Origin: Geosiphon pyriformis uo1
Lineage: Eukaryota; Fungi; Glomeromycota
DNA: 64,000 nt
Assembly (NCBI GenBank): GCA_016748015.1
Contig: JAAOMT010000175.1
Coordinates: 105,395 to 169,394, forward strand
Reading direction: 5' to 3'
Part shown: piece by piece, positions 1-6,700 of the stretch
How positions within the stretch are numbered: the first letter of the stretch is position 1
Layout: each line of letters starts with the position of its first letter
Position numbers and translations under genes: made by a program
Notes under the pieces: generated by a model
The model's input: only the letters and a program-made list of their open reading frames with translations
Databases searched by the model: none
What the model was told of the DNA's origin: nothing

Positions 1-89
1 ATGAATTCAAAGATATCACTTGTCCAGAACCAATCTAATCTACACTGCCAATAAATAAAACATATTTATATTACCAAAGCTGTAGAAAT

Positions 90-1077
90 ATGAATAATCA
101 AAACAAAATTGATTCCCTTTACACTTTTATCAAAGAACAAGTCAAACTCAGAGGGAAAAAATTAAAGATCATTGCTGATTGAGATGAATGTTTACAATCT
201 AGTAAGCCTTTTTTATTGTGAGAAGTTGGTAAGAAAATCCCTTTTCCTGAATACTTTAAAAAGTTTTGAGAAAATTCCCAAATTGTTTATTCTACTACCC
301 TTGGTTCTAGACTAAATGAAAAGGCATAAGAATATTCTTATGTTGACAAAGATGATCCATGAGAAAAAGAATATTGAAATGTTAGCTAATAGAACTTTAA
401 AAAGAAGAATAAAAGCCAATCTAGAACCTCACTATAGTAATCTTCCCAAATTTTATGACCGAACCTTTTATCTTTCATTAGCCCAAGAATTATTGCAGGC
501 TTTAAAAGAAGAACTAATTAGTGAATTAGTGATTATCAGTGCTATGGTCAAAGGTCGGAAAAATGCTGGAAAAGGAAAGAAAGACAAATTCGTTAAAAAT
601 TTTGCTAATTTTTCTCAAAGCAGATTGGTTTTAATAGAAACAGTAATTCCCAAAAAAAGTGAAGAAAAAGGAAGAAGGGATGGCTATAAATCTATTCGTT
701 GAGATTATATTAAAAAAAATGTCTCTGATTTTGATATTTTTATTGATGACAGTGAAATTATTATTGAGGAAACTAGAAAGCTCTTACCTGATAAAACTTA
801 TGTCATACCAAATTACAAATACAACCAAAATCTCCAAGCTTCCAATATCTATTATCTGACAACCAGTATTAGTGATTTAAAAAACAGTGATTTTGTTATT
901 GCTACTTTAGAAATAAAAGATAATCAATTAAAGAAAAAACTAAAATTTCTGCAAATACAAAAGAGAAGAGACAATTGAGTTTTTTGGATAATAATTAGTG
1001 AATCACTAATTTTAAAAACATATGAAGCAATTTTTTTTTCTTGAGCTTTCTTTAGAATACTTCTAATAGTGCTGTAA
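90..1077 (+). pseudogene. HAD-superfamily hydrolase (5'-nucleotidase-like) with hydrophobic C-terminus, translatable with genetic code 4 (TGA=Trp); probable Mollicutes-related endobacterial origin; one TAA and one frameshift
   Basis: ATG at 90 gives MNNQNKIDSLYTFIKEQVKLRGKKLKIIAD(W)DECLQ, a HAD motif I DxD with TGA at 180. Further in-frame TGA at 219, 267, 360, 375; TAA at 327; frameshift near 378-385 into the ORF 316-702 frame. That frame reads through TGA at 700 into (W)DYIKKNVSDFDIFIDD (HAD motif IV) and through TGA at 976 and 1042 to TAA at 1075-1077. Confidence 0.75.
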
Positions 1078-1354
1078 TTATTGAATTCTATAATAAATTT
1101 AATGTAAATTAGTTTCATATATTTTATTTTTATATAGAAATAATTCTATATTAATCTTGTTATGATTTATATTTATCACATTTTATAATAAAATGAATAT
1201 TAAAATTAACAAGTTTATAAATTATAAATAAGCACTATTATTACTTTTCAAAATATTATTAGTCATATTAGTCAATTTTACAGTCATATTATAAAATCAG
1301 TCTTTTATTTATGTCACATAATAGAATATTTACTTTGTCTGATTTTGTTGCAGT

Positions 1355-2754
1355 ATGCTCTATATAAAAGAATTTTTTGGAAATTAGTTATAGTATACTT
1401 AGACAATACCAATATATTTTTTGAAACATTTAATAACTATCTGCTTTATTTTCAAAAAAATTTTGATTATTTCTAAAGTACCAAACTAAAACTTAATCCA
1501 AACAAATGCTTCTTTGGAAAGATTAAACTAAAATTTTTGGAACACATAATAAGTAAAAACAGAGTAAAACCAGATCCTAACAAGATTTGAAAAGTCAAAA
1601 ACTTTTCAGTTCTGACCAACTTATAAGAATTAAGAGAATTTTTAAAATTAGCTAAATACTACAGCAGATTTGTTAAAGGTTTTTTGGATATTGCAAAACC
1701 ATTCTATTATCTGTTATTAAAACATGTTCCATATTTATAGAAAAAAAAACAGCAAAAAGCTTTTAATTATCTTAAACAATACTTAATAAAACACTAATAT
1801 TAATTTATTTAGACTTTAATAAATGTTTTATTGTTATTACAAATGTCTTAAAAAATGCACTAGGAACTATCCTGTTACAAATCAAACTGGATAATTGAAA
1901 ACATCCAATTGTCTATGCCAATTACAGTACTAATATAGTGAAAAAAATATACAGTATAACAAATTTAAAATGTTTTACTATTTATTAAGCAGTACAAAAT
2001 TAAAGACACTATTTTTATTAACTATTTAATCTATATACAGATCACAAAAAACTTATTTAATTATTTAACAAGCCATAATTAGAAGAAAAATATGCACAAT
2101 AAAGTATTTATCTGTAATAATTCCTTTACAAAGTACATTATAAAAAAAAGCCAAGAACATCAATGTTAACAGTTTGTCAAAGATGATACAAATCTAACTC
2201 TGGATTCATAAACACAACTACTTATCAGCAATTATACTAGTATTTATTAACACTGCAGTTTGAAAAGAAATTATCTTAACAGAAACAAAATATTATACAA
2301 AAACAAGTTTGTAATTACTTTATTTAAAACAATTAATTATATTATTATAAATACCAAAACTGTACTATCCTACAACAATAATAAAAAACAATAAAAAAAA
2401 ACTGTTTTGCATAGCATGTACTTTAATCTAATTGCAAAACACTTTAACAAAAACACTACTCTGAAAAAAACAATAAATCTATATTATTGGCCAATAATAT
2501 ATAAAGATATTTTTGAATATATTATCAATTGTAATTTATGCTAATAGAAAAGAGAAGCTAAAACAATAGAACTATTTTGACCTATTTCAGTTTAAAATCT
2601 TTTTAATAGAATCGAGATTAATTTGGTTGGTTTTTTCTCAATTATATCCAAAAAAAATTGTTATATTACTATAACTGTAGACTATTTTACCAAATAGCTT
2701 AAAGTCCAACCCATTCTAGTGGCTAAAGCTAAAACAGTAGCCGAATTTGTGCAT
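1355..2754 (+). mobile_element. Ty3/Gypsy element A, left part (5'-truncated): RT C-terminus, RNase H, integrase N-terminus
   Basis: Degenerate VYLDN(D), LKLNPNKCFFG, RNase H HPIVYA...DH, integrase H..GH/YYW/CxxC and RIGIDLVG. Cut at AEFVH by element B. Confidence 0.9.
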
Positions 2755-3781: not shown

Positions 3782-6700
3782 ATAGTAGAATCAAAAGTAA
3801 TAAAGACAAATCACTTGGAATTTGTGAAATTTTTATTCTAACAATATCACCAACAGTTAAAATTAACCAGCAATCATTGGCCAGCCAAATCAGCCTTCAA
3901 TTGTTACATTAACAAAAAAATTACATACTTCTTAAGAGAACTAACAGATACTGAATTAGCAAAAAAAAATTTCTACAACAAATTAATCCAACATACCAAC
4001 TTATTATTAAATTACAACTTTGCTCTTACCATTATTGAAATCAACTAAGGAATTAAAAATTACATTCAACAAAAATTTTCTATTACTTATGCAGACAAAG
4101 ACAAAAGAAAACCACAAACTCCAGCAGAAACACCAAAGAAAATACAACTATCTATTTAAAAAAAACAAAAAATCAATTTCTTAATCAATTTATTATATTA
4201 CTACACATCTGAAAATACTATCAATATACCATCAAAAGTTGTATTATTATCAGCAAAAACACTATTAGCAATAATAATGTTTTAAAGCAAACAAAAAAAA
4301 GCCGATTTATTAAAAACTTATGGTAATTTTTTTGAAAAATTTAAATTGCAATCACTAATGCCATCAGAATTTTAATCACTGCCATCCCAACCCAATTTCA
4401 GAGCCACTAGTTCTTGGAAAATAACCAACTCAAAAAAAAAAAAAGATGATAATCAAGAATTTAATTATCAAAACCTGATTCCAAAAAACCCAGAAATACA
4501 AACTCTGATTATTTAGGCCCAGCAAAACCTGAATAATTTAAACTCAGCTTCTATTGTTCTCCAAAATTTACCTTCAGTAATTGTAATTGATCCATCACCA
4601 ATTGTACTAATTGCTATTCAATAACAACAAGCTTAACAACAACAACTTTAACAACAATTATCACAACAACTGTTACCAATAACATATGCTTCTATTGCCA
4701 AATTAGAAAAGTTTACCAGCAAAAAAGATAATGTTCAAGTCTGGCTTAATAATATTGCTAAGACAATTGCTGCCAAAAATTGAAACAATACCAGAGCTTT
4801 ATAAGTCATTCCATATTTCTTGTAAAATACTGCCAACTTATAATATTAAAGTTTGGTTTAGAAACCCCAAAACTTCAACAAGTTCAAATTTAAATTTTTG
4901 AAATATTTTATTAACAATAATAGCATTAATTGTCTTACAACTGTCTTCACCACCATTAAACAAAGAGATACTAAAGCCATTACCATTTATTTAGGACATT
5001 TTTATAAAAATTTGCATCAAATACAAATGATTAATATAAACTATTTTACAGTGTCTCAGATCTTGAATTAATTTATCTGTAATTTATACAGTAGCTTTCT
5101 ATAATACATATGTTCATTGCACTTACAAACACTTCAAGACACAGTTATGTATGCCAGAGATTTTAAATCAGCCAAATTTAAGGCCAACCATACTCAAGTT
5201 GTTAATCTAGTAATGAATAGATTATCTGAATTAGATACCAAATTGAAACAATTTGGTGAAGCTATTAATTAGAAAATTGAGAAATACTTAGTTAACAATC
5301 AGGCAATTTATTAATCTTTACAATGTCATAAGAATCAAGAAAATTCAAATTGGTTCCACAATTAGTCATGTTCAATACTATCATCATTAATCAATCAACA
5401 GTAATAACAAGAGATGTGTAATTATTATTATTATAATAAACAAGAGTACTTGAAAATAAATTGTTGTCTAAGACTAAATAATTAATGATCGGAAAATCAA
5501 TATCAAAATTCAATTGCAAATTTCAAACCCTAAACTATACCAGTAATCAATCACTTGAACAATATTACTATCAATCATACTACTCTTAAATAATACAACT
5601 AATTTATCAGCCACTAATCTATCAAACACCAATACTAGTAATTTATCAGCTATCTCAGTCCCAAATAATGTATTAATCCCAACAAATTCAAACCCAGCCC
5701 CAGAACTTATCTCTAAACAGAAACCAAAGACTGAGAATTATTTAACAAAATTGGAGATTAATAATGGTAATGTACCAACCAATTCTTTAATTCCTTGAAT
5801 CAACAATCAGAATTACACCAATATAGTTCAGAAAATGGGTATGCTCAAAACCTGAATTCTCAATACTATTTAAGTTTTCCAGTTACTCCAAAAACCAGCT
5901 TATTCAATAACTTAGAAAACTCAAAAAAACTACTTATTAGTAACATTCTATTAGCAACTGTTATTGAAAACAAATTACTTGTAGTCATATTTTTATTCAA
6001 AGTAAAAGAATCAACAATGCTATCTCTATTTAATGGAACAACTATTAGCACTCAATTTATCACAGCAATATACACAGATACCAAAGTTAATGACCACTCT
6101 ATCAAGCTAATTCTTAATAGTAATTTAGCAGATAGCATCATTACATAACAACTCATGAACCAATTAAGTCATTAAGTTGATTATATTGCCAATACCAGAA
6201 TTATTACTACCAATGAAGTGACAAAAACACTCATTAGTGAGATTAACAACTTCCTGATTAAAGTTAATAATATTACAGCATCTATCAAAGTTTTTGTAAT
6301 GAAAATCACACAATACCAAGTGCTAGTTAATAATGACTGGCTATTTAAAACCAATATCATGTTTAACTGAAATACTTAAGAGCTACAGATTAGTAAAAAT
6401 AATCTGCAAACACAAATATCTGCCACTTGTGGCCACTTTAAACCAATTACCACTATCTAATTACCACTAATTGAATTGGAAAAAGAAAAAAAAAATCTAT
6501 CTGAGAAGTATATCAAATATTGTGGATGAAAGAAGACTATAATAAGCTATTACCAATTTTATTATGGAACAATAAAGGGAAAAGAAGAGAGGAAAACAAA
6601 CCACAAGTCACTACTAACACCAGTAAAACTGCAAACACTTGGCACATACTATACTTAGTAAACACAAAGAAAAAACCATCTTATATTTTTCTTAAGTATA

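Follow-up and report, generated by a model that had tools for sequence, protein, structure and literature searches.

A transposon with TGA-for-tryptophan genes and a HAD-like passenger in the nuclear genome of Geosiphon pyriformis

The start of the window is the right end of a transposon inserted in a Gypsy relic

The window that we analyzed was a 64,000-nucleotide stretch of DNA from Geosiphon pyriformis (C777:105395-169394, in an assembly of 128 Mb and 792 contigs). A cut-and-paste transposon of 6.24 kb, bounded by terminal inverted repeats (TIRs), lay in a Gypsy relic in a nuclear chromosome, and positions 1 to 1360 were its right end. The features of this end and of its insertion site are listed in Table 1.

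Table 1. Features at the left end of the window (positions are those of the window)
Feature	Position	Strand	Basis or remark
DUF7869 transposase, last 11 codons (EFKDITCPEPI) and TAA	3-38	+	Common C-terminus in all copies; rest of the gene left of the window
Spacer, 51 nt	39-89	+	Between transposase TAA and passenger ATG; read directly
HAD-like passenger, dead copy, ~329 aa, C-terminal hydrophobic tail, TGA=Trp	90-1077	+	Translation and sister-copy alignment
Right TIR, ~300-430 bp	1007-1360 (start approximate)	+	Inverted pairs, aligned termini; overlaps the passenger 3' end
Target site duplication (TSD), TATATA	1361-1366		Identical TATATA before the left end; 4-6 bp, exact length ambiguous within the TA run
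Decayed Ty3/Gypsy-type pol relic, insertion target, outside the element	1367-2541	+	High-copy repeat and Integrase_H2C2

The outermost bases of the right TIR were ...GTTGCAGTATGCTC, and the partner TIR was found at C777:100512, 4.9 kb to the left of the window start. Inverted TIR pairs that were 5 to 6.9 kb apart were present in several contigs. The element termini read GGGCATGCTGCAACAAAACCAGAC..., and TATA(TA) adjoined both ends. Furthermore, four uninterrupted copies of the Gypsy repeat held TATATA once, exactly at the position that the element occupied in the window. The TIRs, the TATATA on both sides, and the empty sites with a single TATATA showed that the element had arrived by transposition and had duplicated 4 to 6 bp of its target.

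The Gypsy flank was a high-copy repeat (1350 first-look candidates), and it contained a match to Integrase_H2C2 (PF17921; positions 2395 to 2541, E = 2.1e-8). A preliminary description of this DNA, made from the letters alone, had placed such a relic about 280 bp after the gene; the relic was confirmed, and it began directly after the element end and the TSD. To examine the junction between the two, we used unitigs (Logan contigs) from Geosiphon's own sequencing run, which was probably from the same sample as the assembly. Unitigs spanned positions 1227 to 1434 and 1411 to 1825 with 0 mismatches, and the depth of these unitigs (63 to 90) was similar to that of the neighboring unique sequence and flank, which is the nuclear level. 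Thus, the junction was bridged by unitigs at nuclear depth and was not an assembly chimera.

The transposase gene is part of a multicopy nuclear family

The preliminary description had suggested that bases 1 to 38 might be the end of an upstream bacterial gene. A gene end was indeed encoded there, and the C-terminus ..RDEFKDITCPEPI followed by TAA was found in all copies of a gene that was 584 to 609 aa long. The gene was not a bacterial neighbor, however; it was the transposase of the element itself, and its nearest standard-code relatives were in Glomeromycotina. In a sister copy (L003:993-1535), the transposase matched the DUF7869 profile (PF25273) with 36.6 bits, which was above the curated cut-off of 26 (E = 4.5e-9), and a second matching piece flanked a TGA.

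The Geosiphon genome contained at least 45 transposase loci, which were 36 to 100% identical at the amino acid level. The HAD-like region was found at 70 to 96% identity in at least 10 loci, always downstream of a DUF7869 gene of about 590 aa, and the spacer region (query positions 1 to 96) was conserved at 99 to 100% identity in several loci. The passengers located 3' of the transposase varied by subfamily; they were HAD-like in the case of the window element and coiled-coil elsewhere, and all of them were rich in TGA codons. No introns were found in the transposase and passenger genes. Most of the Geosiphon copies carried private frameshifts or stops. Intact code-4 transposase open reading frames (ORFs) of 609 and 602 codons were found on C648 and C702, and C457 carried an intact code-4 transposase plus a 326-codon passenger. 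On C596, the passenger (L012:6692-7681) was an intact code-4 ORF of 329 codons that was 96% identical to the window copy. The copies were located in Mb-scale nuclear contigs that also bore tubulin genes.

These findings bear on the idea in the preliminary description that the window holds a one-off endosymbiont fragment beside a retrotransposon, namely a piece of endobacterial chromosome that integrated by chance, in the manner of a nuclear mitochondrial insert (NUMT), and is now decaying. The code-4 spelling of the gene, the single stop and single frameshift in the window copy, and a CpG content slightly higher than that of the flanks are what such a fragment might show. A random insert would be unbounded, would lack TIRs and a TSD, and would have unique junctions. 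What we found was a multicopy TIR transposon with a TSD and precise empty sites, with fungal cargo within the same repeats (see below) and with a transposase as the upstream gene. We consider the chance-fragment explanation refuted, with hardly any probability left to it. The element resembles known endosymbiont- or organelle-to-nucleus transfers (NUMTs and Wolbachia inserts) in that DNA in an endobacterial code is present in a host nucleus and has a relative in a Moeniiplasma chromosome. It differs from them in being bounded, in having a TSD and dozens of copies, and in carrying genes in the host code next to genes in the bacterial code.

The passenger gene in the window is a dead copy with six in-frame TGA codons

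An all-frame translation of bases 1 to 1400 showed that the passenger could be read from the ATG at position 90 in frame 3 and then onward in frame 1 to a TAA at positions 1075 to 1077, and nearly all of the breaks were TGA. The change from frame 3 to frame 1 corresponded to the loss of 2 bp (AA) after base 358 relative to intact sister copies. The preliminary description had counted eight in-frame TGA codons. Six of these were truly in frame (positions 180, 219, 267, 700, 976, and 1042), and the alignment with sister copies placed those at 360 and 375 out of frame. It had also noted one TAA and one frameshift; both were present, but the frameshift was located after base 358 and not near 385. 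The codon at position 327 was TAA in the window and TGA at the same site in 8 of 10 copies, which identifies it as a former TGA that mutated. One TGG was kept in the window copy (in VFW, at about position 985). The reported TGA inside HAD motif I (IIAD-W-DE) was real; this tryptophan codon was TGA in eight of nine copies and TGG in a divergent copy on C457.

The window copy of the passenger is dead, and the annotation that fits the "HAD gene" of the window is that of a dead passenger of a transposon, not that of an isolated bacterial insert. We also found that the retention of CpGs, which the preliminary description had set against the neighboring repeats, was only modest: there were 4 CpGs in bases 1 to 1006 (observed/expected ratio of 0.20) versus 0 in bases 1007 to 2400. 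G+C averages across the window ranged from 16 to 40%. There was no Rfam match in the window, and tRNA genes were absent from the window as well as from 41 other loci, which comprised copies of the element and related contigs from metagenomes and assemblies.

The genes of the element use TGA for tryptophan under purifying selection

To characterize the code, we tabulated the codons at tryptophan sites in 11 copies and found 70 TGA, 14 TGG, 9 TAA, and 1 TAG, a distribution that lies well outside what chance would produce. At PRWK, KLWH, and TRWDY, for example, the tryptophan codon differed between subfamilies, with TGG in one and TGA in another, and both the motif I tryptophan and that of FLLWE were TGG in the C457 copy. 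In the standard-code relatives (Gigaspora, a metagenomic fungal-type copy, a sponge, and a crinoid), the TGA sites corresponded to tryptophan or another aromatic residue and never to arginine, the residue that would have spoken against the code-4 reading in the preliminary description.

Nei-Gojobori estimates of dN/dS under code 4 were 0.05 to 0.2 between transposase copies (dS up to 0.66) and 0.23 to 0.5 between passenger subfamilies. Near-identical passenger copies gave ratios of 0.65 to 0.8; for example, the window and C596 copies had a dS of 0.033 and a ratio of 0.8. The family thus displayed TGA at conserved tryptophan sites, interchange with TGG, otherwise intact ORFs, and purifying selection, as a gene of a TGA=Trp organism would. 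These sequence comparisons show that the transposase and passenger have been maintained in TGA=Trp spelling by purifying selection across a diversified family.

We considered whether the TGA codons could be a mutational artefact, such as RIP-like G-to-A changes in TGG, or could reflect a code-4 mitochondrial origin. Fungal mitochondria read TGA as tryptophan, which counts for a mitochondrial source, and the AT-rich genome and the heavily decayed flanking repeats would suit an artefact. However, a TGG codon can become TAG by a transition just as easily as TGA, and a ratio of 70 TGA to 1 TAG is thus not what mutation by itself would give. In addition, dN/dS was far below 1, there are intact ORFs about 600 codons long, and the neighboring cargo keeps TGG. 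As for mitochondria, the copies reside in the Mb-scale contigs with tubulin genes noted above, and no mitochondrial relative appeared in any search that we made. Both versions of this explanation are very unlikely.

The host tubulin genes were fungal in type and contained introns; every tryptophan was TGG, and both of the stops that we read were TAA. Thus, the nucleus uses the standard code. A host nucleus with a ciliate-like TGA=Trp code was ruled out by the same fungal-type, TGG-only tubulins and by the match of a sister-copy piece to an annotated Geosiphon protein. The preliminary description had proposed a TGA=Trp gene that could not be translated in the nucleus; this agrees with the host tubulins and the kinase cargo of the element, in which only TGG is used.

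The same elements carry kinase-like cargo in the standard code

Kinase-like ORFs were located between the left TIR and the transposase, and they contained about 34 TGG codons versus 0 to 3 TGA codons, the latter at the ORF margins. In L020, two kinase ORFs were joined in frame by a 63-nt intron of the spliceosomal type (GT..AG) that read GTAGGT...TAG. Thus, fungal kinase-like genes that are written in the standard code and contain a spliceosomal intron are present as cargo in the same elements, together with the elements' own genes in code 4.

The cargo kinases were only 31 to 37% identical between elements whose transposases were far closer or near-identical. This difference indicates that cargo was captured or swapped repeatedly and was not coinherited, and we rejected the idea that the kinase cargo is a long-term coevolving part of the element. 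Pack-type DNA transposons that capture cargo (Pack-MULE and the like) are known. The Geosiphon elements resemble them in that the host kinase-like genes between their TIRs differ from one closely related element to the next, but the own genes of the Geosiphon element are in another genetic code.

Relatives of the transposase occur in fungi, soil metagenomes, and Moeniiplasma

An exhaustive profile search of a representative library yielded 1517 relatives of the transposase, and those with names included Gigaspora, Rhizophagus, Ambispora, sponge, and crinoid sequences. The Gigaspora and Rhizophagus loci had TGG; in a contig of an Ambispora assembly, TGA was present at the sites where Geosiphon has it. 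A scan of GTDB with a Geosiphon-only alignment returned no transposase relative. When a diverse alignment was used, the GTDB scan identified DUF7869 relatives in Desulfobacterales, which formed a separate bacterial branch, and in some MAGs, and with that pattern it returned none in Mollicutes.

The family was widespread in JGI metagenomes: a single scan identified 123 relatives, and the best 80 of the 123 were 55 to 92% identical. We took the contigs mostly as soil or rhizosphere samples. In the long soil contigs, a standard-code ORF was followed by an intact code-4 transposase and then by code-4 passengers, which is the same layout as in Geosiphon. A second set of contigs (L044, L174, L175, and L169) used code 4 throughout and encoded LRR proteins and a prokaryotic wHTH protein, and the best named relative of this wHTH protein was from Candidatus Moeniiplasma glomeromycotorum (62% identity).

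The neighboring wHTH gene led us to a transposase copy in Moeniiplasma. Specifically, the Moeniiplasma contigs of three MAGs contained a DUF7869 remnant about 1 kb from the wHTH gene. The remnant (L183:8373-9068) corresponded to the C-terminal 233 aa, was 51% identical to the Geosiphon transposase, and had an in-frame TGA. Genes for L3, L23, L2, and S19, for type I restriction-modification, and for a PemK toxin were present on the same contigs. The link to Mollicutes-related endobacteria (MRE) in the preliminary description was borne out for the transposase, which had a sister-clade copy in a Moeniiplasma contig beside L3/L23/L2/S19, but not for the passenger, since the contig stretches that were read (12 to 17 kb in each of the three) contained no HAD-like relative. 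In the Geosiphon assembly itself, a search for bacterial 16S rRNA yielded no bacterial match, only 18S-length and organelle-like ones, which indicates that MRE contigs are not part of the assembly.

In a tree of the transposases, all code-4 copies grouped together (support of 100/98), and this clade as a whole was sister to the standard-code copies of Glomeromycotina. One code-4 group contained Moeniiplasma, the Ambispora contig, and the code-4-only contigs (98/96). In the other, the nuclear copies of Geosiphon were interleaved with the soil contigs that used two codes (100/99). The code-4 transposases thus divide into a clade of endobacterial DNA and a clade of fungal nuclear DNA. These two main subclades had one TGA site in common (FY.wN/D), which argues for a common ancestor that used code 4. 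Copies in a bacterial context were truncated or frameshifted, and the intact transposase ORFs were in the nuclear clade. No element with two codes was seen inside an endobacterial genome.

The passenger protein may have a HAD-type fold

In an alignment of Geosiphon subfamilies A and C, the HAD motifs were present in canonical order: IIADWDECL, (V/I)I(S/T)A, GKK.K, and F(I/L)DD. A codon table for subfamily B agreed with this, with DDH in three of five copies and NNH or NNY in two of five. The +4 residue of motif I was Cys and not T/V, motif II had T/S, motif III had K, and motif IV had DD. The gap of about 100 residues between motifs I and II was the size of a cap, and a hydrophobic C-terminal segment followed the motifs. 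A soil homolog (L110) that was 32% identical to the passenger had NVND and lacked both motif I Asp residues and the DD. Thus, catalysis is not conserved across the family.

Searches of Pfam, NCBIfam, PHROGs, and PDB sequences with all of the stop-free pieces (pieces only because of the TGA codons) yielded no match to a HAD family, and the AlphaFold2 model of the longest stop-free piece (156 aa, C-terminal) had a pLDDT of 37, too low for a usable fold. Two nonoverlapping pieces from two subfamilies had ESM-Atlas look-alikes with scores of 0.87 to 0.91, and these were HAD phosphatases (phage T5 dNMPase, NT5C, PNKP phosphatase, Acid_PPase, and Mg-dependent phosphatase); at such scores, the look-alikes are leads and not proof. 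Based on the motifs and these language-model look-alikes only, we slightly favor a tail-anchored protein with a HAD-type fold. The predicted phosphatase activity, probably that of a deoxynucleotidase, is a more tentative assignment, and we would put it at somewhat under an even chance.

The HAD 5'(3')-deoxyribonucleotidases (NT5C, PF06941; T5 dNMPase, PF26880) share with the passenger the order and spacing of motifs I (DWDEC), II, III, and IV, and HAD phosphatases were the look-alikes of both passenger halves. The passenger differs from them in having no HMM or PDB match and an extra C-terminal membrane tail. It also differs in having a distant homolog that lacks the catalytic residues, and no relatives of it were found outside these transposons. 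A word-based protein search returned only two Geosiphon fragments as relatives of the passenger and no named organism outside of Geosiphon. A bacterial origin of the HAD-like gene is unproven.

A fungal transposon that may have been recoded in endobacteria

The explanation that we find somewhat more probable than all others together is that a fungal transposon was recoded in MRE, that its descendants are spread across both compartments, and that the window holds the right end of one such element with its terminal passenger. In this scenario, a DUF7869 transposon of Glomeromycotina would have entered the endobacteria and acquired their code there. Its descendants would operate across both compartments, with the code-4 genes translated in, or helped by, the endobacteria, and it would be in the nucleus that the copies insert and acquire cargo. 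In its weakest step, the scenario holds that the passenger is most likely a membrane-anchored HAD phosphatase, akin to 5'-deoxynucleotidases, in the service of the element or of its bacterial host.

Another possibility is one-way traffic, in which endobacteria are the only place where the family lives and is under selection, the nuclear copies are dead on arrival and decay neutrally, and the nuclear insertions were made by transposase that arrived with bacterial DNA or lysate. It would account for the finding that selection is seen between unrelated copies but dN/dS is 0.65 to 0.8 among near-identical ones, and it suits the private frameshifts or stops in most Geosiphon copies and the sister clade in the Moeniiplasma chromosome. 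The intron-bearing, TGG-only cargo inside the TIRs argues against it, because cargo that differs between close elements points to capture in the nucleus followed by further movement. The broken copies, moreover, are those in a bacterial context. We regard one-way traffic as unlikely, at about one chance in a handful.

A third explanation, marginally less probable again, is that the transposon is exclusively nuclear and that its UGA codons are read as tryptophan in the fungal cell, with a transposase output that is very low or conditional. The candidate means are a suppressor tRNA, leaked endobacterial or mitochondrial tRNA-Trp(UCA), and UGA-to-UGG RNA editing. Such decoding is consistent with the intact code-4 ORFs of 584 to 609 aa in a nuclear context, in Geosiphon and in many soil contigs, and with the purifying selection within the nuclear clade. 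Several findings weigh on the other side: host genes never use TGA for tryptophan (tubulins and kinase cargo), no tRNA gene was present in 15 elements or contigs scanned or in the window, and the 3 to 8 TGA codons per gene would make leaky readthrough hopeless. The TGA site shared with the MRE clade also argues for an ancestor that used code 4. Furthermore, the A-to-I editing known from fungi repairs UAG and not UGA, which likewise counts against fungal decoding.

Three observations fit no simple model. First, the copies are intact in the nuclear clade and broken in a bacterial context, which is the reverse of a simple picture in which the element lives in the bacterium. Second, to have captured cargo, the elements must have moved again after a stay in the nucleus, even though the nucleus cannot read the transposase. 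Third, the unitig of an intact variant had a depth that was 3 to 4 times that of single-copy sequence. As a result of these three observations, fungal decoding of UGA keeps appreciable weight.

A further reading, which we offer as a speculation about as doubtful as one-way traffic, is that the nuclear copies are the living population and that their genes are "encrypted" in the endobacterial code, so that the products would be made only with endobacteria or components of their translation machinery. If this were true, then the symbiont would be required for transposition and cargo capture in the nucleus, and the element would provide a permanent route by which the two genomes exchange genes.

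Relation to known elements

The transposase of the Geosiphon element, about 590 aa long, matches the profile of DUF7869 (PF25273), the RNase-H-like DDE transposases of eukaryotic TIR transposons. The element also shares with those transposons its TIRs and a short TSD that is rich in TA, and the nearest standard-code relatives of its transposase were in Gigaspora and Rhizophagus. Unlike in those transposons, its transposase uses TGA for tryptophan and is selected as such inside a standard-code nucleus, and it travels with code-4 passengers. Sola elements have been reported from Rhizophagus (PMC5751038). Transfer from host to MRE has been discussed (PMC10507103; PMC5982333, citing Naito 2015), and no MRE donors were found for the bacterial genes of R. 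irregularis (PMC5982333).

In the literature that we searched, there was nothing on code-4 transposons in fungal nuclei, and a mobile element that is kept functional in a code unreadable by the resident nucleus was, to that extent, undescribed. The additions made here are the HAD-like passenger, the proof of transposition from empty sites, the split between nuclear and bacterial clades in the tree, and the cargo that is not coinherited. If recoding in endobacteria is the correct explanation, then the element would be a concrete means by which genes move in both directions between Glomeromycotina and MRE, as has long been suspected, and it would be a natural example of transposase expression being blocked or locked by the genetic code.

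Recoding would also explain "orphan" TGA-bounded fragments in fungal annotations. One example is the hypothetical protein G9A89_020566 [Geosiphon pyriformis], which was annotated on a 600,258-bp contig. This protein was 100% identical to a stop-free piece of a sister copy, and it is no more than a single TGA-to-TGA fragment.

Fungal-code cargo and code-4 genes within the elements

One element copy in the Geosiphon pyriformis assembly carried a kinase-like gene (L020) within its TIRs. A 63-nt intron (GTAGGT..TAG, positions 3881 to 3943 of L020) linked both ORFs of this gene in frame. Because all of its Trp codons were TGG and the intron was in frame, we concluded that fungal-code cargo adjoined code-4 genes. 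Two intact transposase ORFs, L090 and L091, each contained 3 TGA and 2 to 4 TGG codons, with no TAA or TAG. Downstream of each transposase lay a TGA-rich passenger gene for a coiled-coil protein, in place of the HAD-like gene.

Standard-code ORFs were also found on two soil metagenome contigs, L110 and L105, that carried two-code elements. The presence of these ORFs beside two-code elements suggests that the two contigs are of fungal nuclear origin. Judged by eye only, the C-terminal tails of the ORFs were similar to those of TnpB/Fanzor proteins.

Features of the elements and their relatives (G000, Geosiphon assembly; C, contig; L, locus)
Feature	Location	Source or property
Kinase-like gene within TIRs	L020:2886-4596 (G000:C673)	Trp = TGG only
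Transposase ORF, intact, 609 codons, code 4	L090:1028-2854 (G000:C648)	
Transposase ORF, intact, 602 codons, code 4	L091:2188-3993 (G000:C702)	
Standard-code ORFs, C-terminal Zn-finger/RuvC-like tail	L110:2-799; L105:3-911	Soil metagenome contigs
DUF7869 gene, truncated	L183:8373-9068 (GCA_021409665.1, JADQCM010000012.1); also L184, L185	Ca. Moeniiplasma glomeromycotorum MAG contigs
DUF7869 copy, code 4	L098 (CAJVPS010011573.1, 4.8 kb, GC 31%)	Ambispora leptoticha assembly
DUF7869 relative	L076	OY764894.2, Desulfobacterium chromosome
DUF7869 relative	L071	Desulfocicer vacuolatum DSM 3385

Copy number and insertion sites

In the organism's own run (X1), a 452-nt contig of an intact variant covered positions 106 to 555 of the window at a depth of 268, compared to 63 to 90 in copy-specific and flank contigs. 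Relative to the window copy, this variant had an A328G change that restored a TGA codon and an AA insertion at 358 that restored the frame. The inner right TIR (window 961 to 1200) matched dozens of loci in the Geosiphon genome, and in two rhizosphere metagenomes its depth (130 to 356) exceeded that of every other part by a wide margin. Abundant TIR-only (MITE-like) derivatives may be present.

The window copy (1 to 1360) and L012 (G000:C596:351602-352960) occupied the same position in two Gypsy copies. The elements were 94 to 96% identical, whereas the flanks were only 83 to 87% identical; this difference may reflect site-specific re-insertion, gene conversion, or a methylated flank that decays faster.

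Relatives in bacteria and in Ambispora

Desulfobacterales genomes contained multiple DUF7869 copies with 30 to 40% identity (L047 to L050, L076, and L071); the family was not purely eukaryotic. These copies grouped with animal copies in the transposase tree.

The Moeniiplasma DUF7869 gene had a type I R-M gene on one side and a wHTH gene on the other, and genes for ribosomal proteins L3/L23/L2/S19 and a PemK toxin were a few kilobases away. The Ambispora copy, which grouped with that of Moeniiplasma, had its TGA codons at the same sites as the Geosiphon copies. Either its contig is of endobacterial origin and remained in the fungal assembly, or it represents an insert in the nuclear genome. 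The protein annotated at this locus, CAG8665680.1, contained false introns that bypassed the TGAs.
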